Part shown: positions 249 to 51,920 of the stretch, one piece after another
Layout: each line of letters begins with the position of its first letter
Numbering within the stretch: position 1 is the stretch's first letter
NCBI RefSeq assembly: GCF_040938485.1
Contig: NW_027270917.1
Location: 6,820,001 to 6,884,000 of the forward strand
Source: Diadema antillarum
Lineage: Eukaryota
Direction of reading: 5' to 3'
DNA: 64,000 nucleotides
Program-made: the position numbers and the translations under genes
The notes under the pieces: generated by a model
The model's database searches: none
Seen by the model: only the letters and a program-made list of their open reading frames with translations
What the model was told of the DNA's origin: nothing

Positions 249-535
249 CAGGCATAGTGACTCAAATTATGAAGGTCCTGATGTTGAGGGAATTTATGCA
301 GCATGCTAATACACCAAGCTAAGGTTAAAACAGTAACATGCTTGTAAAAAGAAAGATGCTGCTGCCTGACAATCAGACCAAGCTATTGTGCAAGACATGT
401 AAAAAAATATATGTCGCCATATCTGTCGTGAAATTCATTTTCAACATCGGAGTAGTGCCAATTTCCTTTACTAGTTAACAAGCTACACACTAATACCTCA
501 TTCACTGTATCATCTTCCCTTGATAATAATGGAAG

Positions 536-727
536 GTTCTGGCAGAGATCCAAGCAGGGAAGGTCCAAGTTCTGCTGGTCTCCCCCGAGGCGGTGGTGGG
601 AGGGGGCGCAAACTGCCTGCCACACCCTTCCAAGATGCCCCCCATTGCTTTCGCCTGCGTGGACGAGGCCCACTGCATCTCCGAGTGGAGCCACAACTTC
701 CGGCCTTCCTACCTCATGCTGTGCAAG
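536..727 (+). CDS. RECQL4: RECQL4 coding exon (first in window): [23 protein letters not shown]...[26 protein letters not shown]; contains helicase motif II (DEAH) and the RecQ aromatic loop
   Basis: Translation matches the RecQ4 signature DEAHCxSxWSHNFRP. AAG acceptor at 533-535 (in-frame TAA at 527-529 bounds it); AAG|GTGTGT donor; phase 0. The gene's 5' exons lie upstream of the window. Confidence 0.93.
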
Positions 728-1624
728 GTGTGTTTCCTGCTGACTTCTGAATGTCAAATAATAAAGATAAAAAGCTTGTGGTTTCTGCACAGGAAGATTA
801 TGTAATATCAATTTGCATATTGTTGACGACAGAATGGGTCTTATATTTCATACTCCATACACATTGCAAAATGGAACTTATTATATATTTGATACTCCAT
901 ATATGTTGCAAAATGGGACTTGAGAAATAATTTTGGGAGTTTTTGAGATCAAGAACCAAATTGACATAATGAGACAGAAATATCACTTTAGAACTGAAAA
1001 AGTAGTGATTTCACACCTTGGGTACATCATACAAAGCATTTGTTTTACAGAAGGCAATATTTTCATTAGTTCTTGTTTTCAAAAATATTAGTCAACTTGT
1101 GAAAGTCGTGAAAATAGAAACACCGCAAAATACACTGAACATACAGTAAGCACCACAAAATGCAACGGACATAAGGAAATCTATGCAGTTGTACCTTTTG
1201 GAGAGGACTGTTGTGTAATTTTCTAAAAACCTCTGTGTAGATTTTTTTGTGTGTGCAATATTGATGGATTAAAAAGATTGGTATGCTGGGAATCTAAAAG
1301 GTTGAGTAATAACACTTGATTAAGCATTAGAAATAAACCAGACATTTAAGGTTTGTTTCGGTTTTGTTTTGTTTTTTGTTGTTGTTGTTTTTTTTTCAAC
1401 ATGCTAAGGATGCAGTTCCCAGGGCATAGACTATCAAAATACAAAAAGTGCTTTATAACGTGGCATTTAGACCATCACTTTGTAGTTTAGGAACATTTGT
1501 CATTGTGGTTTTCATGTCAAAGAAAATATTGCTCACTATGCAATAATTATACATTTTGGGACAGGGTACTTACAAGGTAGACTCCACACCACTTTTTCTA
1601 TCTTTGGGAATACTTTGAGTGCAG

Positions 1625-1807
1625 GTAGTGAAGGAAAGACTAGGTGTCCGATGTATATTAGCCCTGACCGCTACAGCAACCAGGACCACTTCGGACAGTG
1701 TGGCCCATCATCTGGGCATTGCTGACCAGCCTGGGGCGGTCATACGGGGATGCTCAGTGCCTAGCAACCTCCATTTGTCCGTCTCCAAGGACTTAGACCG
1801 AGAGAGG
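1625..1807 (+). CDS. RECQL4: RECQL4 coding exon: VVKERLGVRCILALTATAT...NLHLSVSKDLDRER (motif III)
   Basis: CAG acceptor 1622-1624, AGG|GTGAGG donor, 183 nt phase 0/0. LTATAT and NLHLSVS match RecQ4. Confidence 0.95.
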
Positions 1808-2183
1808 GTGAGGAAGCAGAGGATATACGTTTCATGATTTTCCATACAACATCATACAACATCATGACACACGCGTCATGATGACCTGTGTGATTAGCAT
1901 TGTACAGCACGATCAGTCGTGACTTTATGTCTACCGAAAATGATAAAGAAATGACATTTAGATATGAAGTTATGATCGATCAAATGACATTGTCTGAAAA
2001 TCACAAAATGGCGCCGAGATGACGGCATAGATATAAAGTTATTGTCATGAAAATTTTATCGTCATTAGATATTGTTTATAAGATATGTTGACTGAAAATG
2101 TCATGTTATTCCGTTATGTCATTGTTGAGATATACAGTCCACAAAATATGGCAGAATGAAAGAAAGATTTTGACAAACATAAT

Positions 2184-2212
2184 AGGTGATACGCTGATAG
2201 CGTATCACCTAA
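2184..2212. other. Perfect 13-bp hairpin TAGGTGATACGCT-gat-AGCGTATCACCTA in a RECQL4 intron
   Basis: Exact reverse complement with a 3-nt loop. Confidence 0.85.
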
Positions 2213-2264
2213 TTACCCATGGTAGTAACTTTTGACATGTACGGTTTGTTCTCCCATCTGGCAG

Positions 2265-2532
2265 GCATTGATTGAGCTGCTTAAGGGGGAGCGGTTCAGG
2301 CGGCTGAGGTCCATCATCATCTACTGTATCAGGCGGGAGGAGACAGAGAGAGTGTCATCCCTCATCCGAACCTGTCTCCAGAGCGACCCAACCCAGTATC
2401 CGGAAGAAGAGGATGAGGCCAATGGGGCAGCTCTGGATGAGGCAGGAAAGCAGGAGGAGAAAGAGACCAGTCAAAAGGCCAAAAAGAAGACTTATCGGAA
2501 GAGATCTAGAGCCAAGAAGTCTACCGCATCTG
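2265..2532 (+). CDS. RECQL4: RECQL4 coding exon: [11 protein letters not shown]...[23 protein letters not shown] plus acidic/basic insertion (motif IV)
   Basis: CAG acceptor 2262-2264, TG|GTAAGT donor, phase 0/1. SIIIYC.RRE.TER matches RecQ4. Confidence 0.95.
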
Positions 2533-3119
2533 GTAAGTTTATTTTGTGTTTGTTATCAAACCCTTTAAGCCCCCCCCCCCCCCCCATTCCTTTTTTTTTT
2601 TTTAATCATTATCGGTCATTACTACAGATGTAGATTCTGAAAGCTGGTTGTTGGTACAATAATATTATGTATATCCTCAGAACCCACACTGTAATGACAG
2701 TTTATGGCCATATATTGTGATAGACATCACACTGGGTTATAGAGGCAGGCAGACATATGAAGAGAGATTTGGATGTGGTTGATTCTTTTGAAGAAATGCT
2801 GCAGTGAGATTATTTTGTTGATATGCTGTCTATGATAACAGCTGCAAAAAAAACAACAATTTCTTCTCAGCTCAACACTATGTTTATGAGAAAGAACGAT
2901 TTCATGAAAGTCTTATGTTTTCTCTGCCTAGGTCTAGACACCCTTTTGCACAGGCTTTTTAGGATTTTCTTGTCAAGAGAAACAAATATGAGAGGAAAAT
3001 ACGTTTAGTGGGGGGTCATCAGTTAGGTCATGAATGGAATGCCAAATGACAGTGAGTGATGGTGATTGCTTACTTCAGAAAACAATCATGATCATTATTA
3101 TTTTGTGCCTGTTTGCCAG

Positions 3120-3382
3120 CCAAGGTTGAGGCCAACAGCTGTGAGGCGTACCACGCTGGCATGTCGGCAGCAGAGCGGAGGAGAGTACAGAACGGGTTCA
3201 TGTCGGGCTCACTGCGCATTGTGGTTGCCACGGTAGCCTTCGGGATGGGACTGGACAAGGCGGATGTGAGAGCGGTTATCCACTTCAACCTCCCACGAAA
3301 CTTTGAGAGCTTCGTGCAGGAGATAGGGCGGGCCGGCAGGGACGGCCTACCAGCCCACTGTCACATCTTTCTGGACGGAACG
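3120..3382 (+). CDS. RECQL4: RECQL4 coding exon: EAYHAGMS...[21 protein letters not shown]...[22 protein letters not shown] (motifs IVa, V, VI)
   Basis: CAG acceptor 3117-3119, ACG|GTCAGT donor, phase 1/0. Canonical RecQ motifs. Confidence 0.97.
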
Positions 3383-3523
3383 GTCAGTTAACAGAAAGCG
3401 TGATGTAATCAAGTGTTTAGATGTTAAAACCTCCTATTGTATCCTTCACCAATCAAAGAATTGTTTGAGACACGTCACTCATATTCTCAGGCTTATTAAG
3501 TTGTAGGTTTAGTAATAAATAAG

Positions 3524-3890
3524 TTAAAGGCATAATTTACCATTTGCAGGTGAAACAAAAAACCAGCATTAGTGCTTCAAAATAGTTCAAAAATTTGAGT
3601 TAGGGCTAGAAACAACCAATGTAAAAATTTTAATCAGTATATTCGATTTTAAGTATTGTTAAACATACAAAATGTGAACAATAGTTATAATAAGAATGTT
3701 TCCAGACTAAACCGTCTGCAATTATGATTTATCGGGAAAAATAGTGATATCTCCTTATATTTTAGGCTTTATTGCAAAAATTTTATATGGCAGGATGTTT
3801 CGTGATACAACTAACCTACACTTATGCATCAAATGTGATATCTTGAACATTTTTAAAATCACTGCTCCCTAAGGTAAACAGGACCTTTAA
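3524..3890 (+). mobile_element. Family A non-autonomous TTAA-flanked element (Kolobok-like; TTAA|AGG...CCT|TTAA), copy 1
   Basis: TTAA at both ends, short imperfect TIR (AGG.....TTTACC), three further copies in the window. TTAA TSD with purine-purine 5' termini is the Kolobok pattern. Confidence 0.8.
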
Positions 3891-4014
3891 ATCATAAGTG
3901 TACTCTCTGTCGTAAGCTATCAAAAGAAATGTCAATTAGACTACTGTCTAAGCATTTACTTTTGCTGCAAGACAATGCTTTGAACATACATCTGATTGGT
4001 CCTTGTGTTGCCAG

Positions 4015-4140
4015 GGGAGTGACATTTGGGAGCTGCGAAGACACACCCATGGCAACTCCGTGGACCGCTACACCATCAAGAAGCTAGTCAAGAGGATCTT
4101 CAGACCCTGCAAGTGTGATCAGATTCGAAGGCTTGGCGAG
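4015..4140 (+). CDS. RECQL4: RECQL4 coding exon: GSDIWELRRHTHGNSVDRYTIKKLVKRIFRPCKCDQIRRLGE (start of RecQ4 Zn-binding domain)
   Basis: CAG acceptor 4012-4014, GAG|GTAAGT donor, phase 0/0. ELRRH...CxC matches RecQ4. Confidence 0.94.
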
Positions 4141-4685
4141 GTAAGTGAGAGGGCTTTGTTTCATCTCCATGGAGACCACACAGATACTAAGTATCATCAC
4201 AATGTTATCTTCCTGGTGTATTACCTTGTCCTTCAGTGAATATGCATAGTATATAGAGCTAGATTGCCACCCTGACATATATACTTAATCATCGGCAATT
4301 TTATTGGCAAATAACACTTTTAACACTCTGACAGACATCCAGTTTTAGTTTCCTGGTAGTGTCTGTTTCTTGATGGAGCAACAATAATGAAAGTCATCTC
4401 TGGATTTTCTTGTCAGTTTTACCACGTTTCTTCCAGATGAATCTTTAGATGCTTCATTAGTCTATTGCCTTCTGAGCAAATTTTGAACTCAGTTGCAAGC
4501 ATGCTTGCAAAATCATTTATGGTTACAAGGGTCTAAAGTCACAAAGGTAGATTAAATCCAATCAATGGTTTGACTTAAAACCATGGACTAAAAACAAGTG
4601 TGAAATAGATGTACCTTGGACACACGCATGTTACCTTAGAGTGCATTTATTATCGGATGTGTGTTGGTGTATGTGCTGTGTCAAG

Positions 4686-4749
4686 GGACCACCAGCCTCA
4701 GATCCTATGGACATTGCATTTAAACATGTAACCGACAGGACTGGCAGAG
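4686..4749 (+). CDS. RECQL4: Possible cassette exon of RECQL4 (GPPASDPMDIAFKHVTDRTGR)
   Basis: Strong donor GAG|GTAAGC at 4749/4750 but weak AAG acceptor. Only one frame is open, and it needs the TAG acceptor at 5068-5070 downstream. Confidence 0.3.
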
Positions 4750-5057
4750 GTAAGCCAGTTTGATGCCCCATTTATACTAGGAGTTTAAGTCTGCAATGAT
4801 GCTTCTGAAGCACTCTTCCTGCCAGTGTGAAAGGTGGAGAAGGCAAACAAGTCTTATCATTCATAAAAATGCATTTCTCTTGGAGATGACTTATCATAAG
4901 TATTCTGGTTTAAAGATTGACACAATAAAGTGTAACATATTTTGGAACCAATCTTGCTAGATGTGGTGACATATACTTAATTGTTTACTGTGGCTTCCGG
5001 TCATTGCTTTGCGACATATTTTACTTACAATGGTCCATTGGTTCATCTCCTTGTCAG

Positions 5058-5163
5058 GCTGATCACCTAGACCAAGAAGATGAGAGACAAGGGGCGTGTC
5101 CAGGCCACGCCATCGCGATTCCAGTGGACGCCACCGTACAGGAACTGGACATCAAGGAGGAAG
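5058..5163 (+). CDS. RECQL4: RECQL4 coding exon: ADHLDQEDERQGACPGHAIAIPVDATVQELDIKEE
   Basis: CAG acceptor 5055-5057, AAG|GTATGG donor, phase 0/1. CxGH and TVQ.LD..EE match RecQ4. Confidence 0.92.
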
Positions 5164-5380
5164 GTATGGTCAACATGATTGCCGATTTCCAACTCATCGT
5201 CAGTCTTGTATATCTCACAAATGGATGGATATGCAAGTGCTTCCAACATTATAAACAGCATCTTGACCAATGTGTAATAGCATCACCAAGTTTTGGTCCG
5301 GGTTTGTCCCTGATGAACGGGAATGGCAAGATTTACCTCTCTCTAACAGCAACCGCTCTCAGACCTCCTTGACGGGTTTA

Positions 5381-5536
5381 GGGCAATTACCCCAGCCTTC
5401 CCCTTACCCTAACCCTAATCCTAATCTTGAACCTAATTTTAACCCTAACCAAAACTCTCACCCTAAACATAACCCTAACCCTAATCTTTACTCTAACCTT
5501 ATCACTAACCAGTATCTAGCTGGATAGTAATTACCC
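5381..5536. repeat. Degenerate (CCCTAA)n telomere-like tract bracketed by short inverted ends GGGCAATTAC...GTAATTACCC
   Basis: CCCTAA/CCTAAT/AACCCT variants at ~5400-5510; 9/10 matching inverted termini. Confidence 0.7.
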
Positions 5537-5749
5537 TTGCTTCTTCTTGGCATCTCGCCTCATTTCGGGCATCCTCCTGTCTCAAGTCAACTTTCCAGAG
5601 CTCTTCCTCTACCAGTCTCTTCCACATCTTCCTTGTCGGTCGTCCTCCCTTTCTTGGTTCATTCACTATGAACTCTAGCAATTTCCTCATAACATTAACA
5701 GTATGGATGGCAATCCAGTTCCTTCAGAAGGAACTGGATATACTGTACA

Positions 5750-5842
5750 TTAACCCATTGAGGACAAGTCCCAAGTATTCTCAGGCAGGGGTCTATAGGA
5801 AATGCTTGTTGTAGCAATATCAGCCCGTCCTCAACGAGTGAA
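5750..5842 (+). mobile_element. Family G ~95-bp piggyBac-like MITE (TTAA|CCCATTGAGG...), copy 1 with decayed right end
   Basis: Homologous to copies at 40816-40910 and 41770-41869. Confidence 0.7.
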
Positions 5843-6044
5843 AAGATTTGGGAATTAGTATATCTTAGAGATGACAGGTCAGAGGTATAGAACTTGAGGG
5901 TGTGATAGGAACACTGCTGATGATTTGTAGAATAACTGACTACCAGGAGTAGCAAGTCCTTTTAATGTTGACCTCTAATCCATGTGCAGGTTGACATTAA
6001 CTTGAAGAATAAAAATCAAACAAATGGATTCAATAAAAGCTTCA

Positions 6045-6906
6045 CTAAACTGGGACATGAAATAAGAAAGTTATGGAATTTTAGGATTTCATGTGTCTGC
6101 CTGAAACGGTGATGCCCAGGCATCATTGCTCTGTTATTAACACTGCAATATTTTGATGTCAAGAATAGAGTTCATTGAGTTTTATTTCAATACTAGAAAG
6201 GAAATGCAGTGAAGATTACTTAAAGGGTCAGATGGAGACTTATGAGTTGATATCTTTGCGAGCACGCAAGTTGTTGCGTGGAGCGAGTTCCTGGTTGTCT
6301 GATCAGACAATCTTCTGCCAAATCGCCTAGCAAATCTGTCTCGCAGACTTCTCTCGGATAGCCTTTGTTCCTTAATGCAGACAGTGTGATATACCGTTCT
6401 TCTTGCGGGGTTGTTTTGGGGGGACGTCTACTCCTTGGTCTGTTTGTAACTTCCCTGATTTCAAGAAATTTCACCCACAGTCTTGATGTGGTGCTTGCGC
6501 TCACCCCAAACCAGGTGGCAACATCCTTTTGGGGTACACCTGCTTGTAGTTGCTTGGGCCTTTAGGAGATTTGATAAGCATGGCATTTTTTTAAAATCTC
6601 ACAAACGACCACTCAGTAAACTGCAGCACTGGCACACATTCATGCAAGACATGCACTGTCATCTGGGCACTTTTCAAAACACATTGCATCTTCACAAGAT
6701 GCTTTTTACAACATTTCAATGCAGACTCTGCCCTATATTCAAGAGTACTGCACATGCCATGATTACATAATCACAGCAGATGGCACATCATTGTAAAGAG
6801 GAATAATCAAGCTTTCTAATGATACCACATTTACGTATGATCATGAAGCAACAAGAGATATATTACCCCACAAACTTGAATTGCAGAACTTTTTTTGAGG
6901 AGTTTA
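6045..6906 (-). mobile_element. Internally deleted Tc1/mariner element hosting the transposase relic
   Basis: The right end reads TA|AACTCCTCAAAAAAAGTT on the minus strand, resembling Tc1 TIRs. The left boundary is only tentatively matched. Confidence 0.5.
6240..6586 (-). pseudogene. Tc1-like transposase N-terminal (paired-like HTH) relic, frameshifted
   Basis: Minus-strand pieces MPCLSN / LQAGVPQKDVATWFGVSASTTSRLW...RPRSRRPPKTTPQEERYITLSALRN / RRLSDQTTRNSLH / NLRARK follow the Tc1 pattern RPRSGRP..TT..xDR.I...SLRNR...S.QTVRNRL...GLRARRP. The DDE domain is absent. Confidence 0.8.
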
Positions 6907-7081
6907 TCTTTCTTCATATGTGACATCACAAACTTATGAATGCATTGTCTAATTTTCCTTAAACTTTAACCAATGTGTTCTGCTAATATTGCTGCATTCA
7001 CTACATCCGCACATATATCAGGGAGAGCTTGTTTTTTAATCTTTCCACTGTTATGATGATCTTTAAATGCGTTTCAATCAG

Positions 7082-7396
7082 GTATTGCCACTCTGATGTG
7101 TTATCTTGAGCTACATCCGGCTGGCTGGTTGGTCACTTCGCCCCACACCTATGCCACGTGCACCCTCAACTTCTACGGGGGTCCACGTCAGCTGCGGGAA
7201 ACCGCCCTCAAGAGCCCCGCAGTGGCGGCGGCGTTGGCCAGGGAGCGCATCAACGGCAAGAGGAAGGCCGACAAGGACGATGGCCGGACTTCGCTGACCT
7301 TCGATGTGGTGGATCTGGCCAGTGCCATGGGCTGGGACGTCCAGCCGGTCAAGCGAGAACTCAGGCAGCTCCAATGGAAGCATGACAAGTTAAGAG
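7082..7396 (+). CDS. RECQL4: RECQL4 coding exon: GIATLMCYLELHPAGW...TFDVVDLASAMGWDVQPVKRELRQLQW
   Basis: CAG acceptor 7079-7081, GAG|GTAAAG donor, phase 1/1. TLxCYLELH and MGW...L.QLQW match RecQ4. Confidence 0.95.
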
Positions 7397-7444
7397 GTAA
7401 AGCAGTCGTGTAAACTATATAGTCAGGCTTTCAACGGTGTCAAG

Positions 7445-7610
7445 TACTGTAAAACCAGAAATTTTCGCATGCATGAAACTTTCATGAATTTCGCGAGGAG
7501 CTGAGATTGGCAAAAGTAAAATGCTAAAGGATTTTTTTTTACACAGTGGATTGAATGCCACTGGCAATTTATGGAAGTTTAATGCTGCAAAAATTTATGT
7601 TTTTACAATT
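7445..7610. mobile_element. Family H MITE (TA|CTGTAAA...TTTACAG/A) ~170-230 bp
   Basis: Inverted CTGTAAAA ends. Related copies at 33299-33527 and 53056-53258, plus fragments near 1090-1150 and 11290-11392. Confidence 0.6.
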
Positions 7611-8133
7611 ATTAATATTGCCAACAATATGCAGGGAGTTTCAAGAAAGGACACCATTTTGACTTTAATATTTTGTCAATTAGCTTTCAAGACAAATCTT
7701 TGTTACTTAATGGTGCCGGTAGCAGTGCCACATACACTAGTCTGTCTATGATTTTATGTTTTTTTATATGTGTGCGTGTATGTGTTTTTTATTATATTGT
7801 ATTGATTGATTGTTTTTCATTTGATTAGTCATTGTTGATTGAATATGGTTGCATACATTCAAGATGAATGTTTTGTTATGTAAATTTATAGAAATCAAAT
7901 AAAGATTACTGAAAAACAAAGCCTAAAAAAAAATTGCACACATGGTCTCCAGAGGAAAGAAGAAATTTGCCTTATCCATTGTTCAAAACAAACTTTGCCA
8001 ACTTTCACCCTCAAATATGTTTTGTTCAAAATTATACAAGAGTTATATGCCACCTCCTGCAGTACTTGAGGGAGAGATAAATTCAAACAACTGTATTCAG
8101 TTTTCGTTCTCTCCACGTATTCGTCGCCATCAG

Positions 8134-8311
8134 GATGGGTGAAGACCGGGGTGATGGTGGAGTTCTCCGACTTGGCCTTCTCCTTCCGTTGCCAAGGCAA
8201 CCTGACCGATGTCCAGCTGGATGGAGTGGTTGACTTCCTCCATGGCAGGGTGGAGGACCTCGAGAGGCGAGAGTTGGGTCAGCTTGATGCTATATATTCC
8301 ACACTCAAGAG
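8134..8311 (+). CDS. RECQL4: RECQL4 coding exon: GWVKTGVMVEFSDLAFSFRCQGNLT...DFLHGRV...STLK
   Basis: CAG acceptor 8131-8133, AG|GTGAGT donor, phase 1/2. TGV.VEFS.LAF matches RecQ4. This exon is absent from the + strand ORF track. Confidence 0.94.
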
Positions 8312-8384
8312 GTGAGTTTAGTTTAAAAAACAAAACAAAACAAAATAAACTTGTAGATGAATGATACCCCAAAAATAAATGTGG

Positions 8385-8700
8385 ATTGAGTGAATGCAGC
8401 AATATTAGTAGAACATATTAATGAAGTTTGTGGAAAATTAAGCAATCTGTTCAAAAGTTATGTTGGTGCCACCATTATTGGATGAGAAGACTACAACAGT
8501 TCTTGATGTCAATGCAGGACAAATATATAAACAAGATATAAAGAGATCTCAACATATTCTCATTATTCTAGCATAATGAAAGAGCGCTTGACTGACCTCT
8601 GTCAGAAAGCAGAAGGAATGATATTACCCTTAATATATGTCAGTAACAGGTCGTGGGAATGTGTATTCTTCATAGAAAATGAAACTGTATAAAAATGTCG
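8385..8700 (+). mobile_element. Truncated copy of family D
   Basis: Shares GAATGCAGCAATATTAGTAGAACA...GGATGAGAAGACTAC...ATATTACCCTTAA with the 11431 and 51356 copies. Confidence 0.75.
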
Positions 8701-9137
8701 AAAAAAAAAGAAGATCAAAAAGTAGTATCTGCTGATGTACTTTAAAATCACATGGTATAGTGGTCTATAGGGACCACCAGATGAAATCAAAGCCATGGAA
8801 CAGAACATTCACCTTTACACCTGTCACCACTCTACAATGTGAATTCTCCAAAGGAGTATGCTCACTATGCCCACCATATGAAACCTTACTCTATTTTCTT
8901 CTTCCAGTTTCTGAGTTGAGATTAGCAAGGAGGCACTAGAGGGTTTCAGTACTGCCCCATACACCAACCATTTTTGTTAGTTTGCCCAATCAGATGTACA
9001 TCAATTTTGAGAGAAAACTCATTTCTGTAATTTTAGCATGAGAGTTTAGAGATGCAATACCCAGTGAACATGACCTTTGCAAATGTCAGTGTAGCCTCAT
9101 TCCGTCTTGCTGCCTCACACTGCTTCTCCTCCTCCAG

Positions 9138-9273
9138 TGTATCCAAGGAGACCTACATGGAGTGCTGCGATGAAGTGGATGCCGAGCTGAGTGACCATCT
9201 TAGGGGTCAGCTGGTCAAGTACTTTGTGGACGAGCTGGACGTGACCAAGGCCAAGAACCCTCGGGTGGAGAAG
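9138..9273 (+). CDS. RECQL4: RECQL4 coding exon: SVSKETYMECCDEVDAELSDHLRGQLVKYFVDELDVTKAKNPRVEK
   Basis: Pyrimidine tract plus CAG 9135-9137, AAG|GTGAGG donor, phase 2/0. L...YF pattern as in the RecQ4 C-terminal domain. Confidence 0.9.
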
Positions 9274-9298
9274 GTGAGGAATATTCTATCAAGTGCCG

Positions 9299-9391
9299 TT
9301 AACCCTTTATGTACTTTGAGTGCAAATTCTCACAGAAGAACTCCATAACATTGTTCACACTGTCCAAAGTCCCTAGTACCGAAAGGGTTAA
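9299..9391. mobile_element. 93-bp piggyBac-like MITE, TTAA|CCCTTTATGTACT...AGTACCGAAAGGG|TTAA
   Basis: TTAA TSD, 13-bp TIR with 2 mismatches, CCC termini. Confidence 0.75.
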
Positions 9392-10152
9392 CCCTGTGTT
9401 GATGCATTTCAGCGGCAGTCCAGCACTGTTTAAAGTGAAAGCAGTTGCAGGTGATTTTCCACTTTAGAGCATTGTGGTACATTCATTTGGGAAGTGTCCC
9501 CAAACATTCACAAAAAATAACAGAAATTAAAAGTATTCTAGATCTCCAAAATAGAAAGCTTTTCTCCCAGCTTCTGTGCTAGGGAATTTCTTATGTATTT
9601 CATTGTTTTCGACTCTTTTCTAAATCTTTTTTATGGAAATCATTGGCGACACTATTCCAATCATAAAGAACATGAAATTAATTGATTTTAATCAGGAAAA
9701 GTAAAGATAATGATACATGTATGAATTTTGGCTAGAAACAGAATTTGGATTGGATTCGTACATGAAATCACATTATTGAGCAATTTTGGGTCTGACATGC
9801 ACTTACAAAATATTGCGTGAATTCGGAGCCGCGTACCCTTGCGTCGCGAATTTGGTCTCAAAAGTTGTGCAAAACTTAAAAGAAAGAAGTCATGAAACGT
9901 TGCGCCCCGAGATTTTTACATTACAGATTTATTATGAAAAATGTCGAAGGGGGGAGGCTCAATCTGCCCCCCCCCCAGTCTTTTTAGGTTTAAGCCACTT
10001 GTCAACTAGGCTCAGTTCAAGCCAGAACTTTACATACACCCTGACTACCAAACAGTTTGAAAGGGGTACAAGAGTTAATGGTACTTGTTGTGGTGCTAGT
10101 CTTGACTTTCCAGTCTCTCATCTGTCAGCCCTGTTTCTTGTTCTCTCAACAG

Positions 10153-10385
10153 GATGGTGTTGCCGATGAAAGCCGCGTCCGCATGACCATTCGGCAGTTC
10201 ATCAGCCTGAACCACGACCGGACGTTCAGCGGCCGCGCAGTGGCCCGCATTCTCCAGGGCATTCCGAGCCCGTGCTACCCGGCCCAGGTGTGGGACGGGA
10301 TCGTCGTTTCTGGAGGAGCCACATTGAGATCGATTTCAGAACCCTGGTCAAGATTGCCAATGAAGAGGTGCTTCGGATGAGATGA
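10153..10385 (+). CDS. RECQL4: RECQL4 terminal coding exon with apparent 1-nt deletion at 10292-10294; restored tail [32 protein letters not shown]
   Basis: CAG acceptor 10150-10152. IRQF...[23 protein letters not shown] is in frame, then RDRRFWR continues in a shifted frame to TGA 10383-10385. As written the ORF stops at 10378-10380. Confidence 0.92.
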
Positions 10386-11430
10386 CGGACGTTCGCTAAC
10401 ATCTGAGACACTGGTGCTGTGATTGCATTGATAATAATGCCTGGTACATAGCTAACCTTGAGTAATCAAAAACTGTTGGACTGTAAGGCATGGCTGGGAT
10501 ACATGTGATGATTGATTCACAACTGACTTTGAAATATTCTCAGGGCTTCCATGTGAAATTGAGTTACAAGAGGCTGTCTGTGATGATTCATTTTTTCATT
10601 TCAGATTTTGAATGTCCTCCAACTCTTGTAAAGTAACATCCTGCTTCAGTCAGATAGTCTGTCAGTCAATCAATCATCATTTGATTATTGATGGATTCAT
10701 TCATTGATATTTTCTGTCATTTCTCCACACAATCATGAATTAAATGATCCTTGTTACAGAAGTCATTACTCATTGAAGTTTTCCAACTACATAAGCAGTC
10801 TCAAAGAAGGGAATAAGTAAAGAACATGTTGGAAAACAGTGGCTTCATGACTAAGACATAATTTAGGGACAAACAGTATAATACAGGGTGATGGAAAGGA
10901 AAAGAAATTGTCAAATATTTACTGATGTATTTTCAAAGTGAACAGTACTCCTTTTTCCTTCAAGTATGGAATTTTCTGAACCATATGAGGGCAGTATGAA
11001 TTATAGCAACCAGTGACTGAACACAGTTAAAATACATCACAATACAGACTACGACTTCCGGTAATATCTATAAGTATGATATGTTTGAAATGACCAGAAT
11101 TCTGTAATAAGGTGAGGTAGTGATTTTCTTTTTGTTTGATCCCACTTGTGCCACAACCGATTTCTCTTCCGATTTTAACGCAACTGATCAACAGGCATCA
11201 AAACAAATTCCCTCTGATACTCTCATATTCATTTAATAAAATCCCCCAAACACTGAGTACTTGTATTCACATTTTTATTATTATTATTTTTTCTTAGTGG
11301 TCGGCAATTCTCAAAAGTTTCATGTCAATGAAAAAGCTGTTGGCTCTAATTCGCAAAAGTTTCATGGCACAAATATATCTAGTTTTGCAGTAAATGGTAG
11401 GGGATACATACCTGTTTTTGATTTTCATCA

Positions 11431-12503
11431 TTAAAGGACAAGTTCACCTTCATGGACATGTAGGTTCAGTGAATGCAGCAATATAAGTAGAACACATCAG
11501 TGAGAGTTTGAGGAAAATTGGACAATCCGTTCAAAAGTTATGAATTTTTGAAGTTTCTGCTCAGCCACGGCTGGATGAAAAGACTACGATAACTTGTGAT
11601 GTCACATGTGTACAACGGTATAATGAAAGAATAAAGAAAATTCAACATATTCCCATTTTTCTCGCATAGCACAAGAACACTCAACTTCTCTCTTTCAGAA
11701 GACAGGGGGAATAATATTACCCTTAACTCTTTATGTGCCGTAGTGGAAACCCCCTGTGTGCCACGTTATTCTGGGACACGAAGGTAGACATACTTTGAGA
11801 AAGAATTCTGTTTTTCCAATTTGTATAACTTCTACAAATTTCTGTTAAGCTGGACATAATAGTGAGCAAAGTTTAGAGGAATGCCAAACTTTGCTTCGAT
11901 ATAAATTGTATGACAAATCTATTTTCAATTTTTCTTTTGAATGACCAGTTTGCTACATTACTGTAAAGGCATGACTTTTGCTTATAAAACCGTGAGAGAA
12001 ACTTAGAATGTACATGCAGATCTGGTTAGGAACACCGCTTGATAGTCAATCACCACATAGAATGCAAGCCGTATGTGAGAGGAACAAAAGCGCGTGAAAC
12101 GCTTTGATTGTACCGCAGGATTAGCGATTTATCAATTCGGTTTTGGCGGCTTTATTTGTTGAGCAGAATATGCGAAGTTGGCACGCCGTCGACTGAGTCG
12201 GACGTGCGAACGTGGCACATAAAGAGTTAACATACTTCAGTAACAAGTTGAAGAAATTTGCACTTTATTCAAAAAGTTAAATTTTGTGAAATTCTCTTTG
12301 TTATTTTCCTTATATCGTTGTACGCATGTGACATCATACACTGTAGTAGTCTTCTCATCCAGCAGTGACTGCGCAGATACTTAAAGAATTTAATAACTTT
12401 TGAACGGATTGTCTGATTGTCCTCAAACTTTCACTGATGTGTTCTACTGATATTGCTGCATTCTCTCAATCCTTATGTACATGAAGGTGGACTTGTCCTT
12501 TAA
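11431..12503 (+). mobile_element. Family D long-TIR (foldback-like) Kolobok-like element, TTAA|AGGACAAGTTCACCTTCAT...ATGAAGGTGGACTTGTCCT|TTAA, interrupted by a nested element
   Basis: TTAA at both ends; imperfect inverted arms over 200 bp; an uninterrupted copy at 51356-51920. Confidence 0.85.
11723..12230. mobile_element. Family F piggyBac-like non-autonomous element nested in family D
   Basis: TTAA 11723-11726 and 12227-12230; perfect 13-bp TIR CTCTTTATGTGCC. Confidence 0.85.
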
Positions 12504-14314: not shown

Positions 14315-14640
14315 TGGACTGAGTGAATGTAGAGATGTTAGCAGAACACATCAGTGAAGGTTGAGGAAAACTGGACATTCTGTTCCAAAGTTATGAATTT
14401 TTAAAGTTTCAGTACCACCGCCAATAGATAAGATGACCACAACTATTTGTGATGTCACACTATGACAATGTTGTAAAAGAAATTATAAAGAGTTTTGACG
14501 TAGTTTAATTTATCCAGCATATAAAAGAGCGCTTGGCTCACCTGTTTCAGTGGGCAGGGGGAATGAATACAGCATATTATGATAGTGACAGTTATCGAAT
14601 TTTCTTTTAATATACATATATATTTGGATTTCTTTGCCCT
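14315..14640 (+). mobile_element. Truncated, diverged copy of family D
   Basis: GAACACATCAGTGAAGGTTGAGGAAAACTGGACA...AAAGTTATGAATTTTT shared with other D copies. Confidence 0.7.
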
Positions 14641-23834: not shown

Positions 23835-24017
23835 NNNNNNNNNNNNNNNNNNNNNNNNNNNNNNNNNNNNNNNNNNNNNNNNNNNNNNNNNNNNNNNNNN
23901 NNNNNNNNNNNNNNNNNNNNNNNNNNNNNNNNNNNNNNNNNNNNNNNNNNNNNNNNNNNNNNNNNNNNNNNNNNNNNNNNNNNNNNNNNNNNNNNNNNNN
24001 NNNNNNNNNNNNNNNNN
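23835..24017. other. Assembly gap (183 N)
   Basis: Run of N. Confidence 0.99.
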
Positions 24018-51355: not shown

Positions 51356-51920
51356 TTAAAGGACAAGTTCACCTTCATAAACATAAGGATTGAGAGAATG
51401 CAGCAATATTAGTAGAACACATCAGTGAAAGTTTGAGGAAAATTGGACAATCGATGCAAAAGTTATGAATTTTTAAAATTTTTGTGTTGGAACTGCTGGA
51501 CGAGGAGACTACTACAGCTTGTGATGTCATATGAGTACAACAGTATAAAAAAAATGTAAAGAAAATTCAACAAATTTTCATTTTTTTCACATAACAAAAG
51601 AGCATTTGACTTGCCTCTTTCTAAAGGCAGGGGGAATAATATTACCCATAACGTACAGTAACGAGTCAAGGGAATGTGTACTTTTTTCAAAAGATGAAAT
51701 TTTGTGAAATTCTCTTTATATTTTCCTTATATTGTTGTACGCATGTGACATCGTACACTGCAGTAGTCTTCTCATCCAGCGGTTACTGCACAAAAACTTC
51801 AAAAAATCATAACTTTTGAACGGATTGTCCGATTTTCCTCAAACTTTCACTGATGTGTTCTAGTAATATTGCTACATTTTCTCAATCCTTATGTTTATGA
51901 AAGGTGAACTTGTCCTTTAA
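51356..51920 (+). mobile_element. Family D complete, uninterrupted copy
   Basis: TTAA|AGGACAAGTTCACCTTCAT...GAAAGGTGAACTTGTCCT|TTAA with long inverted arms. Confidence 0.88.

Follow-up and report, generated by a model that had tools for sequence, protein, structure and literature searches.

We find that the RecQ4-type helicase gene of Diadema antillarum, which appears to be frameshifted in its last coding exon, very probably owes this appearance to a homopolymer consensus error of the assembly, in which four G were written as three (GGG at 10292-10294). The window, by which we mean the whole 64,000-nucleotide stretch of DNA analyzed here, has a GC content of 38%, contains two runs of N (23835-24017 and 48027-48166) and opens inside the helicase gene, which lies on the + strand, as do all exons, reading frames and homopolymer runs described below. 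The original prediction had named a homopolymer consensus error as the most likely cause of the frameshift. Three lines of evidence now support it: contigs derived from sequencing reads of the same organism, the DNA of the sister species Diadema setosum, and the C-terminal tails of RecQ4 orthologues. If the assembly is at fault, the RecQ4 orthologue is intact and ordinary, and the frameshift is without biological significance.

Results

Residues 757-1378 of the closest orthologue that we found (P0001; XP_072169107.1, 1378 amino acids, named by NCBI "ATP-dependent DNA helicase Q4-like [Diadema setosum]") align with the window in eleven exon-sized tblastn matches between 533 and 10382. The portion of the gene inside the window therefore begins at approximately orthologue residue 757, and the exon order over residues 757-1378 is the same in both species. 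The window does not reach the N-terminal, Sld2-like half of the gene; for the D. setosum product, only a faint Drc1-Sld2 match is on record. The upstream exons (533-8309) each read in one frame, with approximate tblastn ranges of 533-730, 1589-1810, 2262-2396, 3092-3388, 4015-4191, 5058-5168, 7063-7398 and 8133-8309. They are followed by the penultimate coding exon at 9139-9273 (acceptor ...tccag/TGT, donor GAGAAG/gtgagg), where residues 1259-1301 of P0001 align at 9145-9273.

The domain content of these exons, each searched individually, is that of a RecQ4 helicase. Both lobes of the SF2 helicase core of the RecQ4 subfamily, DEAD/ATPase and Helicase_C, are present: the exon at 3092-3388 encodes the Helicase_C domain (Pfam, E = 1.6e-17), the exon at 530-802 gives a weak DEAD match (Pfam, E = 0.14), and the D. 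setosum orthologue has both DEAD and Helicase_C. Downstream of the core, where RecQ4 proteins carry a specific zinc-binding/winged-helix region (R4ZBD) in place of the RQC domain, the exon at 7063-7398 matches a single entry among all PDB sequences, the human RecQ4 structure 5LST (chain residues 494-593, E = 7.7e-21). Because of the Helicase_C match and the 5LST match, the RecQ4 identity is supported independently of the name given to P0001. The name RECQL4 used in the original prediction is thus right in pointing to a RecQ4 orthologue but not in its vertebrate form, as this is the gene of a diadematid sea urchin and not vertebrate RECQL4. Both the GC content of 38% and the near-identity to D. 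setosum agree with D. antillarum as the species.

The last coding exon (10152-10385, with an acceptor AG at 10150-10151, delimited by tblastn with P0001) is the only one of the 11 exon matches to change frame internally. Its counterpart in human RecQ4 is the last part of the C-terminal domain (CTD), and as written the exon is broken by a 1-nt gap in a run of G. The letters at 10280-10320 include CCCAGGTGTGGGACGGGATCGTCGTTTCTGGAGG. P0001 residues 1300-1348 align at 10147-10293 in frame 1, and residues 1341-1378 align at 10269-10382 in frame 3. The frame as written (frame A) extends over 10153-10380 and encodes 47 residues ending in ...SPCYPAQVW, followed by a 28-residue tail, DGIVVSGG...CFG. 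Its conserved first part (DGVADESRV...SPCYPAQVW, 10153-10293) has 98% identity to P0001 residues 1302-1349, and we regard the tail as artefactual and the stop that ends it (10378-10380) as spurious. What we take to be the true C-terminal tail comprises 30 residues in frame B (10293-10385, stop at 10383-10385), which is offset by one base from the frame of the first part. Starting at 10293, it reads GRDRRFWR...DF..L.K.A.EE.L..R. The agreement of frame B with the orthologue tails, described below, is far beyond chance. A frameshift directly after CYPAQVW and two stops falling within 5 nt of each other (10378-10380 and 10383-10385), as originally claimed, are both present in the sequence as written.

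Comparison with D. setosum indicates which of the two frames has been maintained. At the corresponding locus of this species (L001, taken from GCA_964275005.2), the DNA of the last exon is 92% identical to that of the window, and the sole indel in its coding part is the G run itself: D. setosum reads GTGTGGGGAC (GGGG) where the window has GTGTGGGAC (GGG). Upstream of the run, every substitution is synonymous when read in frame A (6/6), and the first 47 residues of the last exon are identical. Downstream, the substitutions read in frame B are five synonymous changes and two conservative Ile/Val exchanges; read in frame A, they are two synonymous and six non-synonymous changes. This pattern indicates that, beyond the G run, frame B has remained under selection for as long as the two species have been diverging. 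The introns are far more diverged than the exons, with approximately 76% identity in the piece compared. A look at the sister species, one of the checks that had been suggested for this site, thus returned a run of four G.

Orthologues from a much larger set of proteins point to the same frame. We searched the as-written exon with phmmer against 1.84 billion representative proteins, handling the two frames as separate pieces. The search gave 76 matches, and every RecQ4-type match stopped at query residue 47-50, at the W that precedes the G run; none of the 76 was a RecQ4-type match that extended into the frame-A tail. Among the orthologue tails that we read, 27 of 27 continue in frame B, as (G)RDRR[FY]WR...DF..L...A..E.L, and 0 of 27 continue as DGIVVSGG. 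The motif is common to the orthologues read (for example, P0009 and P0073). The frame-B tail is identical to that of P0001 at 28 of 30 residues, the two differences being Ile/Val exchanges. In an alignment of 15 orthologues, the invariant columns are G1, R5, W7, R8 and F15, all of which frame B carries, and the frame-A tail matches nothing in the same alignment. The conserved C-terminal pattern, ...SPCYPAQV[WY]-G[RK]DRR[FY]WR...DF..L...A.EE.L, has its tail in frame B only and is split between two frames as written; it becomes continuous once the G shown by the read-derived contigs is added. Aligning both translations with RecQ4 orthologues therefore gives a consistent answer (frame B in 27 of 27, frame A in none), and the loss of a G does shift a conserved tail into another frame, as had been proposed.

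One protein among the phmmer matches, P0002, was the second-best match and the only one to reach the frame-A tail. It is an unrelated repeat protein of 398 residues that matches the short motif PAQ..WDGI six times, and we rejected it as a chance match.

Domain and structure searches add little to this comparison. Pfam, which has no model of the tail, returned no family for the last-exon translation in either frame. A search of the orthologue tail against PDB sequences gave chance-level matches to uL22m only, and the tail is in no solved structure.

The read evidence comes from Logan contigs of public runs, not from raw reads. Note that such contigs can show that a variant is present but not that it is absent, and that minor variants are lost from them. 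We compared four sets (X1, X2, X4 and X12) with 9000-11500 of the window. The best-matching runs, X1 (0.83 of words, study P1) and X2 (0.76, study P2), come from two studies of the same organism. One long contig per run crosses the site (X1 record 8, 9861-11450; X2 record 23, 9948-11042), and both insert a G behind 10291, giving GGGG, at depths of 18/18 in X1 and 4.7/4.7 in X2. The X2 contig that crosses the site has zero further differences from the window. Mapping reads over the run had been suggested as a check, with a uniform GGGG named as the outcome that would remove the biological interest; contigs of both runs do have GGGG, at the level of assembled contigs and not of per-read counts. 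The claim that one G is missing at 10292-10294 is upheld by these two contig sets and by the GGGG of D. setosum alike.

The same contig sets reveal a second homopolymer undercall approximately 750 bases upstream of the G run, in the last intron. The window has CC at 9546-9547, where both sets have CCC, with a C inserted behind 9545 (16.5/16.5 in X1 and 5.64/5.64 in X2). The intron is too diverged in D. setosum for a comparison at 9545 to give polarity. Across the unique sequence at 9000-9600 and 10008-11240 (~1.83 kb), there are 0 substitutions between the window and either X1 or X2; all positions at which contigs carry another letter lie within repeats or beyond 11246.

No matched run is on record as RNA. 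One set regarded as possible RNA, X12, covers 9160-9334 only, ending 61 bases into the intron (donor at 9273). Since it runs past this donor, the X12 contig is unspliced or genomic.

Several features of the flanking sequence were recorded alongside these comparisons. Within the last RecQ4 intron, two segments (9336-9419 and 9588-10007) are high-copy repeats of the genome, their contig depths summing to 10^3-10^4 versus ~17 in the flanks; neither has a second copy inside the window. Just downstream of the gene lies an element of ~1.07 kb (11431-12503) with terminal inverted repeats of ~200 nt, whose arms (11431-11628 and 12305-12503) are 81-87% complementary. A shorter copy of ~565 bp with the same arms occurs at 51356-51920, and arm fragments occur at 6931-7002, 8379-8462, 14322-14459 and 38122-38184. 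The arm ends reach a k-mer depth of up to ~7e5 in the DNA contig sets, and the element probably belongs to a MITE or foldback-type transposon family of very high abundance. Between the gene and this element, an A/T-rich low-complexity stretch (~11240-11330) shows three C>A differences in one X1 contig (11246-11251) and one omitted base in another (11328), which may be allelic variation or more consensus noise. Among the X4 contigs, which come from a coral metagenome, two of 151 bases are identical to the RecQ4 3' flank (10454-10604 and 10683-10833), and the site itself is not covered. Their identity to the 3' flank indicates that urchin DNA is present in this reef metagenome sample.

Discussion

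We conclude that the three-base G run is, with high probability, an undercall in the assembled consensus. At the contig level, reads of the organism disagree with the assembly. The disagreement is limited to homopolymer length (GGG/GGGG and CC/CCC, with no substitutions over ~1.83 kb). The uncorrected state is missing from relatives, both in D. setosum and among the orthologue tails, and the substitutions show that it runs against the selected frame. The DNA of the animal would thus carry GGGG, and the gene would be an ordinary intact RecQ4 with a normal conserved tail.

The identity of the background sequence is informative about the origin of the discrepancy. According to the published D. 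antillarum assembly papers, heterozygosity is 2.52%. At this level, unrelated haplotypes would be expected to differ at ~46 sites in 1.83 kb, and the probability of no difference is ~1e-20. The 0 substitutions that we observed therefore argue that the contigs represent the window's own haplotype and that the discrepancy is technical. X1 and X2 are probably reads of the assembled animal itself and hence not independent individuals. Reads from the same animal are, however, the right comparison for diagnosing a consensus error. An identical background, together with read sets that are both longer than the assembly at both runs, is the signature of such an error.

The assembly papers also describe how the genome was built: hifiasm on HiFi reads, RagTag patching with Nanopore reads (R9/R10, from two other animals) and Racon with ~9x Illumina coverage. 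Provided that the window is from the published assembly, a pipeline of this kind could leave locally poor stretches, which would fit an error at this site. The same papers report a QV of 44.5 genome-wide, or ~1 error per 28 kb, against which two errors in 1.83 kb have a Poisson probability of ~0.002. The excess suggests that quality is poor in this particular stretch, as would follow from patching or polishing. The error would most likely stem from long-read patching or low-coverage short-read polishing.

The strongest competitor is a true allele with a 1-nt deletion, either heterozygous in the sequenced animal or rare in the population, in which 28 unrelated residues would take the place of the last 30 of the CTD. 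With the change in the last exon, transcripts of this allele would be spared nonsense-mediated decay. The sequenced animal is highly heterozygous and both of its haplotypes are reportedly kept in the assembly, and contigs could hide a minor or even a 50% variant, such that a GGG/GGGG site between otherwise identical haplotypes could collapse to GGGG. However, if both sites were truly heterozygous, the choice of GGGG and of CCC by both contig sets would be a 1-in-16 outcome. Real haplotype differences are mostly SNPs, at ~2.5%, whereas the ~1.83 kb of unique flank holds 0 substitutions, and both differences that it does hold are one-base homopolymer undercalls, a typical technical signature. 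The tail is, moreover, under purifying selection in frame B and conserved across animals. We therefore consider a deletion allele unlikely. Decidedly unlikely, too, is the more specific case in which the sequenced male carries the deletion on one haplotype, scrambling the last 30 CTD residues in an NMD-escaping, tail-only RecQ4 allele transmitted through sperm. If true, such a tail-only allele would be a natural test of the function of the conserved GRDRRFWR tail. Without an allele of this kind, the point about NMD escape loses its relevance.

The frame as written could instead be genuine, in which case DGIVVSGG...CFG would be a new, species-specific C-terminus. Frame A is indeed open, and its stop lies just 5 nt before that of frame B. 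Yet 0 of the 76 phmmer matches is of RecQ4 type and extends beyond query residue 50 (P0002 being unrelated), the organism's own contigs read GGGG, and the substitutions downstream of the run are 2 synonymous and 6 non-synonymous in this frame; we judge a new C-terminus very improbable. Less likely still is a gene whose DNA truly reads GGG and whose frame is restored by programmed ribosomal frameshifting or by transcript slippage at this run. All that speaks for recoding is that the shift falls in a short homopolymer, and the fourth G is already there in DNA-derived contigs and in D. setosum, so that no recoding is needed. To our knowledge, a run of three G is not a known slippery site. Such recoding is extremely improbable here.

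With a consensus error as the preferred explanation, the practical use of the finding is as a flag for the assembly and for gene models built on this locus. Taken literally, a gene model here would end in 28 wrong residues at a normal-looking length, an error that is easily missed. Two undercalls within 750 bases show that the assembly has locally poor stretches, and other frameshifts in this genome should thus be checked against reads. The alignment itself documents the strong conservation of the last 30 residues of RecQ4 across the orthologues found.

This conservation can be set beside what is known of the human protein. The CTD of human RecQ4 (residues 1117-1208, the last 92) raises single-stranded DNA affinity approximately fourfold and helicase activity more than fivefold (PMC5490261). 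The last exon described here encodes the equivalent of its final part, and the R4ZBD exon at 7063-7398 is the one that matches 5LST (E = 7.7e-21). By analogy, a true frameshift at this position would plausibly weaken DNA binding; we see no sign of such an allele.

The site can also be compared with the homopolymer-length errors of patched or polished long-read assemblies. A run of four bases is short for an error of this class. Otherwise the site resembles its members in its one-base undercall, in the second undercall nearby, in the Nanopore patching and low-coverage polishing reported for D. antillarum, and in flanks that are identical to the read-derived contigs.
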